Assembly: GCA_013416795.1 (NCBI GenBank)
Contig: RQSC01000007.1
Coordinates: 1-17,176 of the forward strand
DNA length: 17,176 nt
Origin: Prasinococcaceae sp. CCMP 1430
Taxonomy: Eukaryota; Plantae; Prasinodermophyta
Direction: 5' to 3'
Part shown: in pieces, positions 7,806 to 17,176 of the stretch
How the letters are laid out: every line of letters begins with the position of its first letter
Numbering within the stretch: position 1 is the first letter of the stretch
The notes under the pieces: model-generated
What the model was told of the DNA's origin: nothing
Seen by the model: the letters and a program-made list of their open reading frames with translations, nothing else
The model's database searches: none
Made by a program: the position numbers and the translations under genes

Positions 7806-8439
7806 GCACGCGCAGCACACGTGTCCCCGTGCATGTCTCAGCGGATCGCGCGCACGCGCCCGCGCCCCCGCCCGCGCGCACCTCCTGCTCCTCGCCGGCC
7901 GGGCGAGCGAGCATCTGCTATCGCCGCCGCCGCCCCCGATAGATTCCCTTCACAGGGCCACCTGCGCGCGTGATTGACGCCTTTGTGTGTGTGTGTGTGT
8001 TGTGTGGCACTGTGCGCCCAAACGCGCGAGTCCATTGAAAGTGACCTGGTGCACATCAAAACGCATGCGCTTCAACAATGCCTTCAGAAAGGAGGCACAC
8101 AAAAATCGGAGGGTGTGTGCTGGCCACACGGCGTACACGCAGCGGCTGCGCGCCCGCGCCCCTCCTTCACCCGCCTCTGCGCGGCGCGGCCGCGTCCGCG
8201 CCGCCCCCCGCACTGCGGCTCGGCGGGCCGCCGGCGGCGCCGCCGCCGACGCTTTTCGTGCCGCAGCAGGGGGCGATCGGCAGTTGTGGGGCGGGCGAGG
8301 GGCGCGGCGACGAGCACAGGCGGCGAGCGCGTGCCGTGCATATTGACGCATATCCGGCACTCTCAACGGTGCTGGCGGGCGGCCAAGCGCGGGCGCGCCG
8401 ATGGTCACGAGTGGCGCACACGCTGGGCGGCCAGAGGAG

Positions 8440-10989
8440 ATGTTGGCACATCAAACGTCCCGAAGATGGGAAAGGCCTGCGGCGCTCGCCGGGGGGCGGA
8501 ATCTTCTTCGTGCGCGACCACGTCGTGCCCAGCTGTTTGTGTTGGCGGCGGTGCTCGTGTCTTTTTGCGCATGCACCGCAGCGGTGTCTCTCACCGCCAA
8601 CGCCGCTGGCGGGCTCTTTGTCACTATTTCCTACACGAGCGATGAACCCCTCTCGGGGCTGCAGTTCGAGCTGGCGGACGCCGCCAGTGGCGCGCCGCTC
8701 GTCCTTGTGGGGGATGGACAGGGCGGCGCAGCGGCTGCCGCACAATTTGATGTTGCGACAAGTACGGAGCCAGGCGTGGTGCGTGCGCGACAACGCGTGC
8801 TGCACTCTCTAGAGTCTTCCGCACGAACTCGAGCACGCGTCTCCGCTCGTTGTCATGCGCAGACAAGCGCCAATGCAGACGCATCTGACTGACACATCCT
8901 CGCATCGCGCTCCGACGAAAATGGGCGCGCGCACGGCGTTGATGCTGGAGCAAAGGTGCTCGTTTTCAGCCCTGCATTCACCAGCAGCCTGCCGCCTGCC
9001 TCAACTTCGACTTTGCTCACCACTGTCACTCTTGCGGTGGCTATGGCAGATGGGGACCAAGCCTGCATCCGGGACCCTGTCGCGACCGCATCCTCGGGCG
9101 GTGGCAATATCACTGTGGATGTGTCGCTGTCACCTTGCGAGGGTGCAGATGAGGGCGGAGGGGCAACTCCTCCCAGCGATGCGCCATTGCCTCTGCCGAC
9201 AGGCTTCGACGTGGCGCTTTCGGCGTCCGATAGTGATGCGGACGGTCTGGTGACGATTACCACTGCGTCTGCGGTGCCGTTTTCCTCTTTTAGTTTCTTG
9301 CTGCAAGCACCGGATGGTTCCCTAGTCGCTCTGAGCGGCACTGACGATCCTCCCAGCGGCGCTGCCCCTCAGGCTGGCTTCACCGTACTGGTGTCTACCG
9401 GGCCGGGGGGAGGCAAAACCAGGGTGAACGCGTTTGATCCGTCTGGCCAGAGTATCGGGCCTTTCGCGGAAGGTACTGTTCTTGTGGTCCTTCAGGTGTC
9501 GGCCTCCGGGGGTGTGGCGGGCGCTTGCGTGGCTGATGCGAGCGTCTCCTCCGGCTCCGTTGACGTCGAGGGGAGCCCTCTTCGCGTGTCGACGGACTGC
9601 GAAGGCGGGGAAGCGCCACCAACGCCGCCACCGCCCTCGAGCTCTACGCCTCCGTCCGAGCCTGCTCCGCCTCCTCCCCCGAGTCCCACCGTCGTAGGCC
9701 TACCGGCGGGCTTCGACGTGGCCCTTTCGGCGTCCGACAGTGATGCGGACGGTCTGGTGACCATCACTGCCGTGTCGGCGGTGTCATTTGTCGCCTTCGA
9801 GTTCAGGTTGCAAGCGCCCGACGGTTCTTTGGTCGTCCTGAGTGGCACCGACGACCCTCCCAGCGGCGCTGCCTCGGGCTTCTCCGTCTTTGTGTCTGTC
9901 GACCAAACCAAGGTGACCGCGTTTGATCCGTCCGGCCAGAGTATCGGGCCTTTTGCGGAAGGTACTGTTCTTATGGCCCTGCGGGTGTCGGCCTCCGGGG
10001 GCGTGGCGGGCGCTTGCGTGGCTGATGCTAGCGTCTCCTCCGGCTCCGTTGACGTCGAGGGGAGCCCTCTTCGCGTGTCGACGGACTGCGAAGACGGGGA
10101 AGCGCCACCAACGCCGCCACCACCACCACCTAGCCCACCCTCCCCGTTGGAAAGTGGTGGAGGAGGTGCCACGGGCGCGGAAGATGTCGTCATGGATATG
10201 AGCGATGTGGACGCCAGCGGAACGCTGACAGTCGGCTACACGAGCAAGGTACCCATTTACGCCTTCGATATCGTCCTCGCGGATGCCTCCGGAAATACGA
10301 TCGCAGTTGCCGAGGCCTTTGGGGGCGAGGCGGATGCTGCTGGCTTCGACGTCACAATAGACGGAAACACCGGAGTCGTGCGTGGCTCTGCGGCTGGCCT
10401 CGGCGAGCGCGCGGGCGATGTGGGGGTGGACAGTAGTCTGCGCCAGCAGGATCCTCAGCCCGTCCCCGCGTCCTCGGAGCAGCGTGTGCTCACACAACTG
10501 CGGCTGACAGACCCACCCCAGGAGGGCACCAGCCTGTGCACGAAAGAGGTGGCCTTCGAGGGGAGCGACGGCGAGCAGCTCACTGCGAGAGAACCCTGCG
10601 ACAAGAGTGGCGCTGTGCCCTCCCCACCGCCTTCGCCCTCTGGCAGCAACAATGCGAACGACGGAAACAACGATGGCGGCGGTGGTGGCCTCAGCGCAGG
10701 GGCCATCTTTGGCATTGTCATCGGATCGACGGTGGGAGGCGTGCTGCTAGTAGCGCTAGTGGTGTTCCTCCTGTCCAGACGCAGCCGCGAACGCCGCCCG
10801 GCGGCCATCTCGCCGTCGCAACGCAACGGCGGCGTCAATGGTGCGAGCGGCTCCTCTCCGCAACCGCCGCCAGGTGAGAGCGACTTCACCAACAAGGTCA
10901 CGAACGTTACGAACGAGTCGGCCGCCGGCTCACCGCCTATCAACCGCCCGTCGCGCGGTGGCAAGGGGCAGTTCGTGGAACTGGTATAA
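8440..10989 (+). CDS. Type-I membrane protein with four cohesin-like beta-sandwich repeats, Pro/Ser-rich linkers, one TM helix and a cytosolic tail; join(8440..8778,8956..10989), about 790 aa
   Basis: Signal-like LFVLAAVLVSFCACTAAVSLTA. Intron 8779-8955 (GTGCGT, CTGACTGAC 8885-8893, AAAG) joins STEPGV|VLVFS inside repeat 1. Repeats follow V.I.Y.S..P...FQF.L.....GGAA.AAGF.V...G.V..F.....I.P......L..L.V....C..x19-23..C. TM at 10702-10773 followed by SRRSRERR. Alternative start 8401; the acceptor is weak. Confidence 0.8.
9202..10121 (+). repeat. Intragenic tandem duplication (units about 9202-9636 and 9709-10121; offset 507 nt, falling to 489 nt after an 18-nt indel)
   Basis: Long near-identical DNA blocks, e.g. 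GCGTCTCCTCCGGCTCCGTTGACGTCGAGGGGAGCCCTCTTCGCGTGTCGACGGACTGCGAAG present in both units. Confidence 0.95.
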
Positions 10990-11267
10990 TCGCTGCTGGC
11001 CGAGCGAGGCAACAGCTCGTTGGTAGCGCTCGTTTTCTTCAGCCTGCACAGCGCGAGGCTGAGTGATGCTATTTACTTCACAGTCTTCCAGGCGTGCGCC
11101 CACGCTCGTTCTCGTCCCAAGGTGGAACACGCGAGGGAGCACATAGCGCGCAGGGAATTCACGCGCGCGTCGTCGGTAGGAAATAAGCATCCAAATGAGG
11201 GAGTGAGCACACGCTGCAAAGCGCCCTCGCACGACAGGCCATGGTGGCCTTCAGAGCGCGCTTGCTC

Positions 11268-12380
11268 CTACTCAGCCTCAGGCTCCGCAGGTGCCTGCTC
11301 AGGCTCGGCTGCGGGTGCCTCCTCCTCGGCGGCCGGCGCCTCCTCCTCCTCCGTAGCGGCCTCTGCGGGCACCTCGTCCTCCGCTGGCGCCTCCGGTGCA
11401 GCGGGCGCATCCATCTCTGCCTCCGCGGGAGCGTCTTCCACGACAGGCGCCTCTGTCTCTGCGGGCGTCTCACCACCGCCCTCGGTGGTAGCGCCGTTGA
11501 ACGCGGCGCCCGCCTCAGGCTCTGCCTCTGTTGCCACCCCCGCGTCACCTCCCGCCGCTGTCGCCGCCCCCTCGTCCACAGGAGCCTGCTGCGCGTGAGC
11601 ATCCCCGACGGCAGCTTCATCCCCAACCTCTGCTTTGGACGCTTCGGGAGCGTCAGCTTCAGGCTCAAGTCCCGCTGCCTTGCGCGCGGGCTTCACAACG
11701 ACTGCATTGTAGGCCTCGAGCTCTTCCTTTGAGACCTTGCCGTCGCCGTCGGTGTCAAGATCGGCGAAGTCGAGCGGTTTGGCGAGGTCGGCGATGTTCA
11801 GCGGTGCCAGCTATGGGACGCGTACAGCCACCGGCCCCGTGGCCACAAGCGTGTCAGCGCAGTGCGCACGGATTGGCCAGCTGTGGCCTCCCACGCTCGG
11901 GCGCGTGCGCCATGGCGCACGGGTGCGCCTGCCTGCGCTCCGCACCTTTGGCGGCGCGCTCCCCTGGAGCGGTGGCCTCCGCCGTGAGCCCTCAGGCGGC
12001 CGCACGCGCTTTGGTTTGGGCACGCCCTTCTCTAGCGCGACCTTGATGGCGTCGAACACGGCGTCCTTGTCGGCGAGCACCGCGTCATCTTCTTTGGCAA
12101 GCGCGCGCACGCCGCGCATGATTGTGTGCGGGAGGCCGCTCTGATCGAGGAATCGCAGGAAATCCTCGCGCCCGCGCGGCGGCGCCGGCCACGACTTGCG
12201 CAGGTGCTGCGGCGGCGCGCCCGGCGCGCGCAGCACCTTGGACACGAACGCCACCGCATCCTTCTTGTCGGGAGGGCCGCTGTTGTACAGGTCGAACACC
12301 GCGGCCTTGACGGCGTCTGCGCTCCCCGAGGCGTGCAGCGCCTCCAGCAGCGCCTCGCGCTTCGCCTGCGCAGGGTCCAT
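11268..12380 (-). CDS. Protein with two MYCBP/AMY-1-like (D/D-type) repeats, one EF-hand and an acidic Ala/Glu/Pro tail; complement(join(11268..11810,11946..12380)), 325 aa
   Basis: ATG 12380 (MDPAQAKRE). Intron 11945-11811 has AAG|GTGCGG, CTGAC at 11857-11853 and CCCATAG. EF loop DTDGDGKVSKEE at 11756-11721. Repeats KREALLEAL.ASG..D......DLY and REDFLRFLDQSG...T......AL.KE resemble MYCBP KREQFRRYLEKSGVLDTL..VLVALYEE. Confidence 0.8.
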
Positions 12381-12860
12381 CGCCGCCGCCCCTCGGGCGC
12401 CGCCCTCCGCCGAGCCCGCCCGGAGCACCGCAGTGGCGCGCGCGCACCCACGCCGCCCGCCAGGGCACACGCCGCACGCGCCAGGGCGCGCGCGCGCGTC
12501 CCAAAGCGGCTCCAGCGGACAAGCCCCCACCGCAGAACGCGCGCGGATTCCGCCCTCAGATTTCAAACGGCGAAAAACGCACTCGATGATCAAAACGAGC
12601 GTTAAAAGAACGGCAATCGGTGCGCCGCGCGGAGAAGAACAAACCCTCCATAAACCGTAATTCAGTGCGCAACCAGTGCTGTACCTTAACTCGCCGAATG
12701 GGCGCTGGTTCCCCGAGGGCGCGCCCGAAATAGAGCTGTTGCTGCGCCATGGGGCGCGCGAGGGCACGCGGGTGAGGCGAGGGGAGTGTGTGTAGGCGCG
12801 CATATGTGTGGGTGTGTACACACGAATACTCACACGTGGACCTTCACACACACACACGCT

Positions 12861-12896
<36 letters not shown>
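12861..12896 (+). repeat. Poly-G tract (36 nt), preceded by short (CA)n
   Basis: Seen directly. Confidence 0.9.
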
Positions 12897-12897
<1 letters not shown>

Positions 12898-12971
12898 GAG
12901 CCGTGGCCATACGACGCGCCCGAGCGCGCGCGCCGCGTGGGCGCGCGCCCGCGGCGGAGGCGGGGGTTGGG

Positions 12972-14100
12972 ATGGCGTACGCAGCGATGTCGCCGTCGGA
13001 CGTGCTGCCGCAGGACATGCTGGCCACGCTGCCGCCCGACCCGGCCGCGCAGCACGAGCTGGCCGTCAAGCTCGCGGCGTACGCCTTCAACGCGCGCGCG
13101 GCGGGGCTCGAGGCCGAGGTCGCCCAACTCAAGAGCGCGCTGGCCGCAAAAACCAATGCGCTCAAGGGGGTCGAGGCACAAGCCTCGGAGCTGCGCCTTG
13201 AGCTCGCCGAGGCGCGCGCGTGCGCCGAGCAGTCGCTCGAGGAGCAGTCAAAGCTCGTGGGGGAGAAGGATGCGCTTGCAGCCACAGTCAATAGGCTCAA
13301 TAGGGAGAACGCCAAGCTCGGGGCGTTCAAGAGGAACCTGCTGCAGACCCTACAGGACGATGACGACGTCCAGGTGCGCCCCTGAGCCCCTGCGCATTGA
13401 TGAGTGCGCCCGCGCGCCTTGGTTTCGCCGCGCTGACGAGCCTCGTTCCGGTCGCGTGCGCAGGCTGGCGCGCCGGTCGAGGGGATCGGTGCGCCGGGCT
13501 ACAGCGCAGCCAAGCGAGAGCCGGTGACTCCCTCATTGTCCCTCTACCAATCGCAGAGGTACGAACCCGCGCGCGCTCGCGAGTGGCGGCTGTCAAGGCG
13601 CGCGGAGCTCCGGCACTGACGCTGAGAGCTGGTCCGTCGCAGTGCCGTGCCCACCCCAACAAACTCCGCGCTGCGCTTGGCCGGTATGACGCCCGCTGGC
13701 GGTAGTGCGCCGCCCGGCGCCTCCCAGGTGGACGGCAAGGAGTTCTTCCGCCGCGCGCGCGCGACACTCGCCAACGAGCAGTTCACAGCGTTCCTGCGGA
13801 ACATCAAGGTGCGTGCCTGCGCACGCTCGCGCACTCGCATGCGCATGCGCATCGTGTGCGTATCGCGCGCGTGCACGTGCTCACATGTCCCTTTTCGCGC
13901 GCCGGCACGTCTCTCTCGCTCCGCGGACCCGTGCACGCTCGCACCCGCCCGTCCACCCTCAGGAGCTCAACGCGCACCGCCAGACGCGCGAGGAGACGCT
14001 GCAGCGCGCCGCCGACATTTTTGGCGCCGACAATGCTCACCTGTACACGGCCTTCGAGGGACTGCTCACCCGACATATGCCATTGGCGGGAGGGGCGTAG
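12972..14100 (+). CDS. At4g15545/NAIP (NAI2-interacting protein)-like coiled-coil protein; join(12972..13373,13464..13558,13643..13808,13963..14100), 266 aa
   Basis: N-terminal LPQDMLATLPPDP..Q..LA.K, coiled coil ending V.RL.RE.AKL..FKR.LLQTLQDD, C-terminal VDGKEFFR.AR..L..EQF.AFL.NIK|ELNAH.QTREETL..A..IFG.DN..LY..FEGLL.RH. Introns GTGCGC..CAG, GTACGA..CAG and GTGCGT..CAG keep frame; CTGAC in the first two. Confidence 0.92.
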
Positions 14101-14615
14101 GTGGCGCGCTCACGCGCAGCGCACGCTTCTCCGACGGAGAGTGGCACGGACCCTCACAGGGAGCCTCCCCTCACCTCCTGACCCTTCGACAACAGTAAGA
14201 TAAACACCCAACTGTAGGCCATCGGCGTGCTGACTGGCATGCGGGCGCGCCCACGCCTGCCAGCGCCACATGCCTGCGGCGAGTGCGCGCGCAGCGGTCG
14301 CGGCGTGCACCGCCACGCATAGCGTCCTGGCGGCGCCGAGGTTCAGGTTACGAGCTCATCAATATAGGGTTTGATTGTAGGGTTCAAATTTCACATCAAA
14401 TCGAATAGGCGTGTGCCGGGCACTCTTGGCGCCGCCGCTTCGGGCGTTTCGCGACGAGTGCGCCATTCTTCGCGAGTGCGCCGCCAGAGGGCGCGGGGCC
14501 GGCCGCAGGGCCTATCGGGCGGGCGGACGGGCGAGGGGGAGCCAAGGCGCAGCCCCTCCCTCCGCCCGCACGTGCTGTGACCCGCGGCAAGCTAAAGCCG
14601 CGCAGCCGGCGCAGC

Positions 14616-15860
14616 ATGACGCGCCGCGGCTTGGCGCGGCTTGGCGAGGCTCAACCGTACGTGTACGAGCGCGGTGGCGCATTCGAGAGCCTGCCTGCCG
14701 AGACTCGCGCCCGGCTCGAAGGGGTCAGCGTCGGCGCGGCCGCGGCGCGCACCGGCGATAGATTCGCAGCCGCAGAAGACGCGGCCGATGCCATCTTCAG
14801 CTGGTCCAAGTACCCCCCGCGTGTGCCCAAAGGCGTACCGGACTATGCGCAGCTCTGCCTTGAGGTCGCTTCGCAGATGGCCGACCAAGCGCTTGCGGCG
14901 CGCGAGAGGGGAGAGGAGGTGCCGCCGAGCCCCGAGCCGCGGCACTACGACACGCTGCGCGAATTCGGTGAGCACCCTGACGGCAGCGGCGATGGCGTGT
15001 TCCGCACCTTTCTCACTGAGGTGGACTTCTTCAATGAGGTCGACGGCGCGCTGCTCGACGCCGAGGCGAGCATAGCGGGCTCCGAAGCGGATGTGCTAGC
15101 CGCCGCGCGTGCCGCCGCGGATGCGCTCACCGAAGCCAATCGCACGCGCGCGGTGCCGCAAGCGCTTCAAACTGAGACGGGAATCACGCTGGCGACCGCG
15201 CGTTACCACGCGCATCGCGGCGGCTCCACGCGCGGCTCGGACGGGACCGCACTTGCGCTTTCTGACAGGGCCTCGCCGCGCTCCCGAGCTGCCACGGCCA
15301 GCTCCATCATCAATCGCACGCTCACGTTCCTGCGGCTACGCGCGCAGCGACAGGCAGCTGCCTCGCGCATCTCCGCGGGCGACACCACCGCCACTCTCAC
15401 TTTGCTGCCGGAGTGTGTCACACGCAGGGGAGAGCTCGCCCAGCCGACCAACCCGACGGGCGTAGGATGCACGTGGCCGCTGCCCGCGGACGTCGACGCC
15501 GGACTGTGGGAGGATGCCAAGCGGACCGCCGAGCACAAAGCGCGTCTATTGGCCGAAAGCAAGCGCTTCGCAGAGTCACGACGGCCCCTCGCCGCGCTGC
15601 ACGCGGCGCGGCGCGAGTGCGCGGCCGCGCGCGAGCGCGAGGAGGCCGCGCGCAGGCGCGCGGTGGACGAAGCCGTGCGGCGGCGTATCAGCGCGGCACT
15701 TAGCCGAGCGGCGCCCGAACGGTTAGCAGGGTACAAGACGCGCCTGGAGGAGCGGCGCAAGCGCGCTGAGGAGCTGCGCTCCGAGGCAAGCATGGGCTTT
15801 CGGGTCCTCAGCTCGGGGCGGTCGCTCACCACAGGCAAGGTGGTCCACCACACGCTCTAA
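14616..15860 (+). CDS. Hypothetical protein with C-terminal coiled coil, 414 aa
   Basis: Long ORF with ATG at 14616, protein-like composition (IFSWSKYPP, FRTFLTEVDFFNE, WEDAKR..EHKARLL, E/R-rich helix) and a downstream TGTAA. No family recognised; an in-frame intron cannot be excluded. Confidence 0.72.
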   Translation: MTRRGLARLGEAQPYVYERGGAFESLPAETRARLEGVSVGAAAARTGDRFAAAEDAADAIFSWSKYPPRVPKGVPDYAQLCLEVASQMADQALAARERGEEVPPSPEPRHYDTLREFGEHPDGSGDGVFRTFLTEVDFFNEVDGALLDAEASIAGSEADVLAAARAAADALTEANRTRAVPQALQTETGITLATARYHAHRGGSTRGSDGTALALSDRASPRSRAATASSIINRTLTFLRLRAQRQAAASRISAGDTTATLTLLPECVTRRGELAQPTNPTGVGCTWPLPADVDAGLWEDAKRTAEHKARLLAESKRFAESRRPLAALHAARRECAAAREREEAARRRAVDEAVRRRISAALSRAAPERLAGYKTRLEERRKRAEELRSEASMGFRVLSSGRSLTTGKVVHHTL

Positions 15861-15939
15861 CTGTAGTCTAACAGCTACGCGCTCGCGGGCGAGAGCGCAG
15901 CTGACTGCCGGATATGCGCGTCAGCATGGACGCCCTGGC

Positions 15940-15944
15940 TGTAA
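15940..15944 (+). promoter_or_regulatory. TGTAA candidate polyadenylation signal of the coiled-coil gene
   Basis: 79 nt after the stop codon. Confidence 0.5.
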
Positions 15945-16032
15945 CATATGTACAGTACGATTCGGTTGTGTACGCCTGGACGCCTGCGGCGAGGCGCACA
16001 TCGCACGCGCACGGTGGCGAGCGAGCAGGTGG

Positions 16033-16949
16033 CTAGAGGATGAGTTCTACGCCGCTCTCCTCGCAGAATGCCTTGAGGGCCTCCTCGCCATCTGTCCCGG
16101 AGAAGCGGTTCCGGCTCAAGTCGAGTCGTTTGAGGCGCTGTGCGCCGCCGGCCTCTTGCTCCGCAAGCGCCGCGTCGCGCGCGGCGGCGAGCGAGCATGC
16201 GAGCGCGTAGGCGCCCTCGGCGCCGCAGGCATTGGCGCTGAGGTCGACGCTCTCGAGCGCACCCAGCCCGACGCGCTCAAAAGCCTCGCCCACCTGGCGG
16301 AAGCCCTCGTCGCCAAGGCGGTTAGACGCCAGCCCCAGCGTCTTGAGCGACTCGTGTTGCGAAGCAGCTTCGGCGGCGGCGGCGGCACCCTCGGCCTCGA
16401 GCGAATTGAATCCGAGTTCGAGGCGGACCACTCCGGCGCCGTGCGCGCGCAGCGCGGCCGCGAGCGTCTCGCCTGCAGACGCCACGAGCGCAAGCCGCGA
16501 GAGTGGCAGCTCCTCGATCTCACACACGCGCAGCACGACCTCGAGCGCCTCGGCATGACCGGACTTTAGGGTCGCGAGCGCGAGGGAGCGGAGCTGTGCG
16601 CGGGGCAGCAGCGCGCCGCATGCGGAGACGCGAGTTAGCGCGCCGGTTTGCATGCGTTCTCGCGCGCACGCACGCGTACACCACGCACCTCGTCCTCCTC
16701 CAGCCAGTCCTCGCGCGCCTCGAGCAGCGCCTCCAGCGCCTCGCGGTGGCCGCCCGCCGCCGCGAGGTCCGCCGGCGTCTCGTCATGCTCGTCGAGCGCC
16801 GTGACGAGCGCGTCGAGGTCCGCGCCCTCGCCGTCCCCGTCGCCGTCTCCGGCCTCCTCGGCGGCGGCGAGCAACGCCCGCACGCGCGCGGCGTCGCCCG
16901 CCTCCGCCGCCTCGTGCAGCGGCGTCGTCACGCCCCCCTCGTCCGCCAT
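16033..16949 (-). CDS. Small ankyrin-repeat + RI-like leucine-rich-repeat protein; complement(join(16033..16593,16689..16949)), 273 aa
   Basis: ATG 16949. ANK motifs TPLHEAAEAGD...VRALL and DEHDETPADLAAAGGHREALEALL. Intron 16688-16594 has GAG|GTGCGT, CTAAC at 16638-16634 and CACAG, phase 0. LRRs RLELGFNSLEAEGA, LKTLGLASNRLGDEG, LESVDLSANACGAEG, LKRLDLSRNRF. Confidence 0.88.
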
Positions 16950-17176
16950 CGTCGCGGGGAAGCGGGAGCCCAGCGCGCCGCGCCCCGTCCACACCGCGTG
17001 CCGAACCCGCGCTCTGGCGCCCGCACGGGCTGCACCTCGAACCCCGCGTCGCCCAGTGGCCACAGAAACCTTATCCATCAGCCGAGGGGGAGCGCTGTGC
17101 GGCACACGGCGCGCGGCACACCCGTGCCAGCGCGCCCGCGCGCCGGCCTGCCGCGCGCCATGGCGTGCCGCGGCTG

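Follow-up and report, generated by a model that had tools for sequence, protein, structure and literature searches.

Cohesin-dockerin assembly is the textbook route to bacterial cellulosomes, of which cohesins are the "sockets" that bind dockerin modules, usually in a calcium-dependent manner. A cellulosomal scaffoldin combines several cohesins on flexible linkers with a carbohydrate-binding module (CBM) and a bacterial wall anchor (SLH, sortase or type II dockerin), and each cohesin folds as a nine-stranded flattened beta-sandwich (jelly-roll) of ~140 amino acids (aa). Eukaryotic cohesins were thought in a 2017 survey to be confined to choanoflagellates and sponges, to which TMEM132 was later added, with no dockerin partner known (PMC6030884). 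The genome paper of Prasinoderma coloniale mentions neither cohesin nor dockerin (PMC7455551), and our literature search found no paper linking Prasinoderma with dockerin. This report describes a gene at positions 8440-10989 of a stretch of 17,176 nucleotides (nt) from Prasinococcaceae sp. CCMP 1430 (contig RQSC01000007.1, positions 1 to 17,176; the whole stretch is hereafter called the window). Its product is a type I membrane protein with an ectodomain of four cohesin-fold modules carried on Pro/Ser/Thr-rich linkers.

The assignment of the fold rests on structure prediction followed by two kinds of fold search. Module 2, modeled with AlphaFold2 (AF2) from a 97-row family alignment, reached a pLDDT of 89.7 and a pTM of 0.85, and the first 25 PDB matches returned by Foldseek for this model are almost all cohesins, the best being 2jh2 (E 2e-4, TM-score 0.56). 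In VIA-align, an exhaustive independent alignment against 48,161 representative chains, ranks 1 to 17 are likewise cohesins (Z 8.1-10.4, rmsd 2.6-3.6 Å over 112-124 of 138 residues). The AF2 model of module 4 (pLDDT 91.5) gave the same picture, its top 15 VIA-align matches all being cohesins (Z 9.0-10.4), and the matches of both modules superpose with an rmsd of ~3 Å over 110-124 residues. CBM2-type and other CBM-type folds come lower in both fold lists (Z 5.6-6.0), and a CBM fold was rejected on the ground that cohesins score ~4 Z units higher for modules 2 and 4. The nearest structure clusters of the ESM Atlas (TM-score 0.72-0.75) are from Fidelibacterota and Bacteroidota, with Cohesin annotated in 29-47% or Dockerin_1 in 65-72% of their members. 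As modeled, the modules are cohesin-fold members of a divergent subfamily barely covered by Pfam, not strict members of PF00963, and we hold the structural and homology claims with very high confidence. The gene and its product are laid out as follows.

8440-8778, + strand: exon 1, covered by transcript contigs and encoding 113 aa, counted from its ATG (8440).
8608-9144, + strand: module 1, type A and the most like the bacterial modules (ISYTSDEPLSGLQFEL...GGAAAAAQFDV), interrupted by the intron; Cys pair 37/61.
8779-8955, + strand: spliceosomal intron of 177 nt, GT..AG, within module 1.
8956-10989, + strand: exon 2, 677 codons and the stop, encoding the rest of module 1, the other three modules (2-4), the linkers, the transmembrane helix and the tail.
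9139-9201, 10090-10179 and 10600-10689, + strand: other linkers, of a Pro/Ser/Thr-rich composition similar to that of linker 2.
9193-9606, + strand: module 2, type B, predicted cohesin-fold beta-sandwich, Cys pair 191/215.
9601-9708, + strand: linker 2, EAPPTPPPPSSSTPPSEPAPPPPPSP, Pro/Ser/Thr-rich.
9700-10095, + strand: module 3, of type B like module 2, to which it is 84% identical.
10180-10605, + strand: module 4, type C, membrane-proximal, with a ~25-aa low-confidence loop in its predicted cohesin fold, Cys pair 528/548.
10690-10776, + strand: predicted transmembrane helix, LSAGAIFGIVIGSTVGGVLLVALVVFLLS, an uncharged stretch of 29 aa (aa 579-607 of the exon-2 protein), followed by RRSRERR.
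10777-10986, + strand: cytoplasmic tail of 70 aa with the end GQFVELV and the end motif SPP[IV]NRPS.GG..FVEL[VT].

Exon 1 begins with an Arg-rich start and a hydrophobic, signal-like segment (LFVLAAVLVSFCACTAAVSLTANA, ending ...SLTANA), which is a putative signal peptide, and continues into GLFVTISYTSDEPLSGLQFEL...GGAAAAAQFDV; ordinary-looking signal peptides are borne by the relatives P0021 and P0022, described below. The four modules are homologous, measure ~120-140 aa each and all end in a Cys pair (37/61, 191/215, 354/378 and 528/548 of the exon-2 protein, with spacings of 23, 23, 23 and 19). All four are mutually alignable, modules 2 and 3 at 84% identity and the other pairs at 25-50%. 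Searches were run per exon, module 1 being assessed as two exon-encoded halves. In the family profile the exon-1 half (residues 57-113, via P0027) occupies positions 4-66 and the exon-2 half positions 69-117; because the halves adjoin, the intron must interrupt one complete module.

Extensins and related hydroxyproline-rich glycoproteins (HRGPs) carry long Ser-Pro(3-5) arrays with Tyr cross-link motifs. The linkers of this protein, among them PPTPPPPSSSTPPSEPAPPPPPSP and PPTPPPPPPSPPSP, are short (20-35 aa) and Pro/Ser/Thr-rich in translation, with TPPPP/SPPP runs and Tyr in none; having neither the long arrays nor the cross-link motifs, they read as extensin-like spacers in a protein that is not an extensin. 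The transmembrane helix is likewise predicted from the translation, is conserved in P0021 and is directly followed by RRSRERR, from which a type I topology follows by the positive-inside rule. A near-match of Pfam DUF4690/SNORC (E 3e-5, below the cut-off), which covers the transmembrane region, was dismissed. In the tail, the motif RRS..RRP.AI ... SPP[IV]NRPS.GG..FVEL[VT] is common to P0021, though the two species are too distant for similarity at the DNA level, and matches no known domain. An earlier note on this DNA had described the signal-like N-terminus, four repeats with these Cys spacings, linkers, transmembrane helix and FVELV tail, all of which lie where it placed them; its two larger proposals, that the repeats are cohesin-like and that tandem modules, Pro-rich linkers and a membrane anchor make up a scaffoldin-like architecture, are borne out by the fold searches (the top 17 matches for module 2 and the top 15 for module 4) and by this layout.

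The gene model joins two long + strand open reading frames (ORFs) that lie in different frames (8401-8892 and 8956-10989), an alternative in-frame ATG being present at 8401, 5′ of the exon 1 ATG at 8440. The GT donor at 8779 and the AG acceptor at 8954-8955 allow ...TEPGV to be spliced to VLVFS... in frame. Two runs, X1 and X2, which belong to two separate studies of one organism and are probably transcriptome assemblies, each contain one Logan contig that skips exactly these 177 nt with GT..AG, whereas the DNA run X10 is contiguous and unspliced across 8779-8955, and small contigs of a marine metatranscriptome (X5) cover 10578-10949. Taken together, the spliced contigs, their unspliced genomic counterpart and the X5 fragments indicate that the locus is expressed and that the 8778/8956 junction, which the note had wanted confirmed, is right; an unexpressed locus, the refutation the note had allowed for, is not what was found. 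The GC content of the gene (0.62-0.70) is like that of its flanks, and the 0.66-0.70 of the window fits the value of 69.8% given for P. coloniale (PMC7455551); the host is a high-GC marine green picoalga, probably of the genus Prasinoderma. The neighbors are eukaryotic, namely a SIR2 gene at 227-1498 and a leucine-rich repeat (LRR) gene at 16033-16653. Because a spliceosomal intron lies within module 1, the GC content is that of the neighbors and the protein belongs to an algal multigene family, the gene is a native nuclear gene of the alga. Elsewhere in the window, positions 4272-4972 are a scaffold gap of ~700 N with microsatellites of (CA)n and (CGCA) type on its two sides, and the long "ORFs" across it are artefacts; the downstream neighbor (11268-12380, - strand) encodes a very acidic Ala/Glu/Pro-rich protein whose last exon has no Pfam match.

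The relatives of this protein were sought exhaustively with HMMER, by running a profile of its repeats against 1.84 billion representative proteins. Three of the 36 matches (P0025, P0033 and P0041) were rejected as spurious, and the profile matches are of two kinds, algal-type proteins with Pro-rich linkers and proteins from marine bacteria that are uncultured. The matches of this profile include no named protein of chlorophytes or streptophytes, an absence that is weak evidence because the profile is shallow. A word-indexed protein search retrieved only four ORFs, all from marine metagenomes, which are 75-86% identical and are same-species variants. Among the algal-type relatives, P0021 (Tara Oceans) has 1191 aa, ~8 modules and a transmembrane helix and tail like those of this gene, ending KFVELT; regarded as an orthologue, it has the last two modules, the helix and the tail in common with this protein. 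P0022, with 2104 aa, contains at least 14 modules and a transmembrane helix, and the other algal-type relatives are P0026, P0029, P0034, P0038, P0044 and P0049, the clusters of P0038 and P0049 including EukProt proteins of Prasinococcus capsulatus.

Several of these proteins have features of their own. A 114-nt in-frame insert (GTGCGG...GCGCAG) at residues 70-107 of P0021 (L005:365-478) splits the GFQF motif of its first module between GFQ and F, and looks like an intron that a prokaryotic gene caller has read through, at a position that differs from that of the intron in the window. P0071, from the cluster of P0049 (Prasinococcus/MMETSP), has four Bact_surface_Ig-like domains (PF16403, E 1.8e-59) alongside its cohesin-like modules, a further surface module of bacterial type in the same lineage of algae. 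P0040 and P0066-P0069 (MMETSP, probably Prasinococcus) have a PAN/Apple domain, then a pair of cohesin-like modules and, at the C terminus, a half-dockerin segment, which scores 18 bits with Dockerin_1, below the cut-off, and is present in some isoforms and absent from others.

The bacterial members conform to the consensus I.GFQF...GASGG.AE.AGF.VST..VLGFS..G..IPAG...C...S..G....C, which is nearly the motif given in the note for repeats of secreted marine bacterial proteins. Pfam Dockerin_1 forms the end of some of these chains (P0028, P0032 and P0035) and type IX secretion system (T9SS) sorting domains that of others (P0023, P0046 and P0052), and the modules are combined with fn3, trypsin-like and adhesin domains. 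P0028 is encoded on the metagenome-assembled genome (MAG) "bacterium TMED198", and a related-locus search with it recovered its own MAG only. An hhalign comparison of the algal-only (A6) with the bacterial-only (A3) modules gave a probability of 99.6% (E 6.3e-25) over 116 columns that include both Cys, the terminal Cys pair is invariant in both sets, and the homology of algal and bacterial modules, as judged from these alignments, is not in doubt. What is thereby defined is a large, unnamed cohesin-like subfamily of marine Fidelibacterota and Bacteroidota, largely missed by Pfam.

The connection of this subfamily to described cohesins can also be followed in sequence, step by step. Pfam, NCBIfam and PDB sequence searches with the raw exons gave no relevant match, and the Pfam/NCBIfam scans of the exons found no CBM, SLH or dockerin. 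The best PDB sequence matches of the family profile (algal and bacterial modules together) are cohesins, if marginally so (5n5p, E 0.0057; NagJ, E 0.1-0.3), and the bacterial-only profile reaches solved cohesins at E 0.036 at best. Four bacterial family members match PF00963 (best E 2.4e-9), and P0046, scanned whole, does so at 2220-2349 (E 9.7e-12). The link from the algal modules to PF00963 is thus transitive, as it runs only through the bacterial members and the family profile.

In a maximum-likelihood tree of 97 modules (129 columns, unrooted), a branch with an SH-aLRT support of 99 sets apart 39 of the 41 algal rows, the two exceptions being long branches, and the Pfam-positive cohesins of P0046 fall on the bacterial side. 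Within the algal group, modules 2 and 3 and a variant module, RX, are sister to P0021:820-945 and module 4 is sister to P0021:952-1079, so that the C-terminal half of the architecture predates the split from the owner of P0021; a third algal group consists of the type-A modules from P0021 and P0026. The placement of the P0046 cohesins, in a tree that is unrooted and short, weakly suggests that the algal group arose from within bacterial diversity. Recent horizontal gene transfer and contamination were rejected in view of the intron in module 1, the native GC content, the expansion of the gene family and its presence in Prasinococcus. The horizontal acquisition proposed in the note could therefore only have been an old event: homology to a bacterial subfamily is upheld and a recent event is excluded, and any transfer from bacteria must be old, since the modules form one supported algal group whose named relatives are Prasinococcus.

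Variation within the array and between strains bears on what the protein may do. At the DNA level, modules 2 and 3 form a mosaic, with 79% identity over the 5′ 174 nt and 95% over the 3′ 220 nt. For the two copies (9193-9635 and 9700-10124), dS is 0.61 and dN/dS 0.23 in the 5′ part, and dS is 0.12 and dN/dS 0.29 in the 3′ part. Purifying selection acts on both parts, positive selection between the two modules being rejected at these values, and the 3′ part appears to have been recently homogenized by gene conversion. Metagenome contigs of the same species, with flanks ~98% identical to the window, carry RX, a fifth module type that is 50% identical to module 2, in place of module 3 (L006, with P0002, three assemblies; 1437-1704) or of module 4 (L001, with P0004; 1938-2357), both being compared with 9812-10670 of the window. 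These contigs look like cassette swapping between strains, chimeric assembly being the alternative. P0001 and P0003, which lack module 2 or module 3, could be assembly collapses, and P0011, on an independent marine metagenome contig, has the same four-module layout as the window.

The protein may be a membrane-anchored scaffold onto which surface or wall proteins dock, a reading to which we give an even chance and which is favored because the modules have the fold of a socket dedicated to protein-protein binding and because the homologous bacterial subfamily travels with dockerins. In such a scaffold, the signal peptide would send the protein into the secretory pathway and each Cys pair would form one disulfide per module. 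Ser-Pro motifs are O-glycosylated in green algae and plants, and the linkers, probably hydroxylated and O-glycosylated as in green-algal HRGPs, would serve as stiff spacers, carrying the modules away from the plasma membrane and into or through the wall. A secreted protein with a calcium-binding dockerin-type module would then be captured non-covalently by each cohesin-fold module, the three module types (A, B and C) and the strain-specific cassettes would confer different partner specificities, and the conserved cytoplasmic tail may link the scaffold to sorting or cortical partners. A wider proposal, more doubtful and entertained tentatively, is that the early-diverging green lineage Prasinodermophyta runs a full eukaryotic cohesin-dockerin system, in which such scaffolds would assemble dockerin-tagged kelch and LamG proteins, proteases and further secreted proteins.

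A number of results count against docking through cohesins. Pfam Cohesin (PF00963) matches exon 2 in no case at E<=10 and none of the 40 algal modules at E<=1; the algal-only profile matches no solved cohesin among PDB sequences; and hhalign aligns the algal profile only weakly with the Pfam-positive cohesin P0046:2217-2353 (probability 9%). A regular expression for dockerin loops found none in the six frames of the window. The signal peptide, the disulfides and the glycosylation are putative, being deduced from the sequence only; having a fold in common does not establish a function, and there are non-cellulosomal cohesins that bind other ligands.

The modules may instead bind ligands other than dockerins, such as the same protein on neighboring cells (colony cohesion), gamete partners, bacteria or viruses, with the tail signaling or anchoring inward. 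Such an adhesion or recognition receptor, which we consider unlikely, would be in keeping with the known eukaryotic cohesin-domain proteins (TMEM132, choanoflagellate and sponge), which are read as adhesion molecules, a vertebrate dockerin being unknown (PMC6030884). The conserved tail motif and the replacement of module 3 or 4 by RX on same-species contigs are also what recognition molecules would show, although the dN/dS of 0.23-0.29 between modules 2 and 3 is purifying, not diversifying, and the bacterial relatives sit with dockerins.

The protein could also be a structural wall glycoprotein or wall-to-membrane tether, or bind wall or capsule glycans in the manner of a CBM, which we judge improbable. 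Its linkers resemble the spacers of hydroxyproline-rich glycoproteins, and CBM-type folds do appear further down the fold lists (Z 5.6-6.0); however, cohesins outrank them by ~4 Z units, the linkers have no Tyr cross-link motifs and no Pfam CBM was found in the exon scans. P. coloniale is reported to have a thick wall, to lack known wall polysaccharide synthases and to carry surface-glycosylation genes of bacterial or archaeal type (PMC7455551), yet these data come from what is perhaps a different species from that of the window, and a thick wall without known polysaccharide synthases fits the docking and the structural models alike. An artefact, whether contaminating bacterial DNA, misassembly of a repeat or an ORF without function, is very improbable: repeats 2 and 3 do share 220 nt at 95% identity, where Logan contigs break, but the intron is spliced in RNA-type assemblies, the GC content is that of the flanks, the SIR2 and LRR neighbors are eukaryotic, the same four-module ORF recurs on the contig of P0011 and dN/dS is below 0.3.

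Were the docking scaffold confirmed, the alga might be said to plug other secreted proteins onto its own surface, a form of display undescribed for green algae. An expressed, membrane-anchored cohesin-fold array in a green alga would, if dockerin-tagged secreted proteins are encoded in the same genome, make a eukaryotic cohesin-dockerin system directly testable. The gene may also bear on the wall of Prasinoderma, no known wall-polysaccharide synthases having been found in P. coloniale (PMC7455551). If the wider proposal of a full system were true, it would be the first outside prokaryotes and anaerobic fungi, and would imply a modular protein wall or surface layer in which strain-specific cassettes set which partners are displayed.

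Set against the described systems, the algal protein comes nearest in layout to the cellulosomal scaffoldins (C. thermocellum CipA and A. cellulolyticus ScaB; 1ohz, 5nrk), with which it shares tandem cohesin-fold modules, Pro/Thr-rich linkers and surface display, its modules matching scaffoldin cohesins at Z 9.5-10.4. It differs from them in that its modules are only 8-15% identical to theirs, have no Pfam Cohesin match and bear a Cys pair each; it has no CBM, its anchor is a eukaryotic type I transmembrane helix with a cytoplasmic tail instead of SLH or sortase, and its host is phototrophic, with no cellulose-degrading context known. The non-cellulosomal cohesins (Archaeoglobus fulgidus 2xdh; C. 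perfringens NagJ/NanJ 2jh2, 2o4e and 2vo8) rank first or close to first among its structural matches (Z 10.4, Foldseek E 2e-4) and also supply the best of the marginal sequence matches, and they are used outside cellulose degradation; they are, however, single modules in soluble enzymes or toxins, whereas the algal protein is a membrane-anchored array. TMEM132 and the choanoflagellate and sponge proteins likewise place a cohesin-type module in a type I membrane ectodomain (PMC6030884), but they have a single cohesin beside BIG/Ig domains and belong to a different lineage, and none of these proteins was retrieved by the HMMER repeat-profile search. The multi-module surface proteins of marine bacteria (P0028, P0024, P0023 and P0046) share the GFQF, SGGAAE.AGF.VS and VLGFS..G..IPAG motifs and the C-terminal Cys pair; on the bacterial side these come with dockerin or T9SS ends and fn3, trypsin or adhesin domains, on the algal side with HRGP-like linkers, a transmembrane helix and introns. 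The relatives in Prasinodermophyta (P0021, P0022 and the P0038/P0049 proteins of Prasinococcus) have the same module family, linkers and transmembrane anchor, from which this gene is set apart by an array of 4 modules, as against 7 to at least 14, and by its own mix of three module types.

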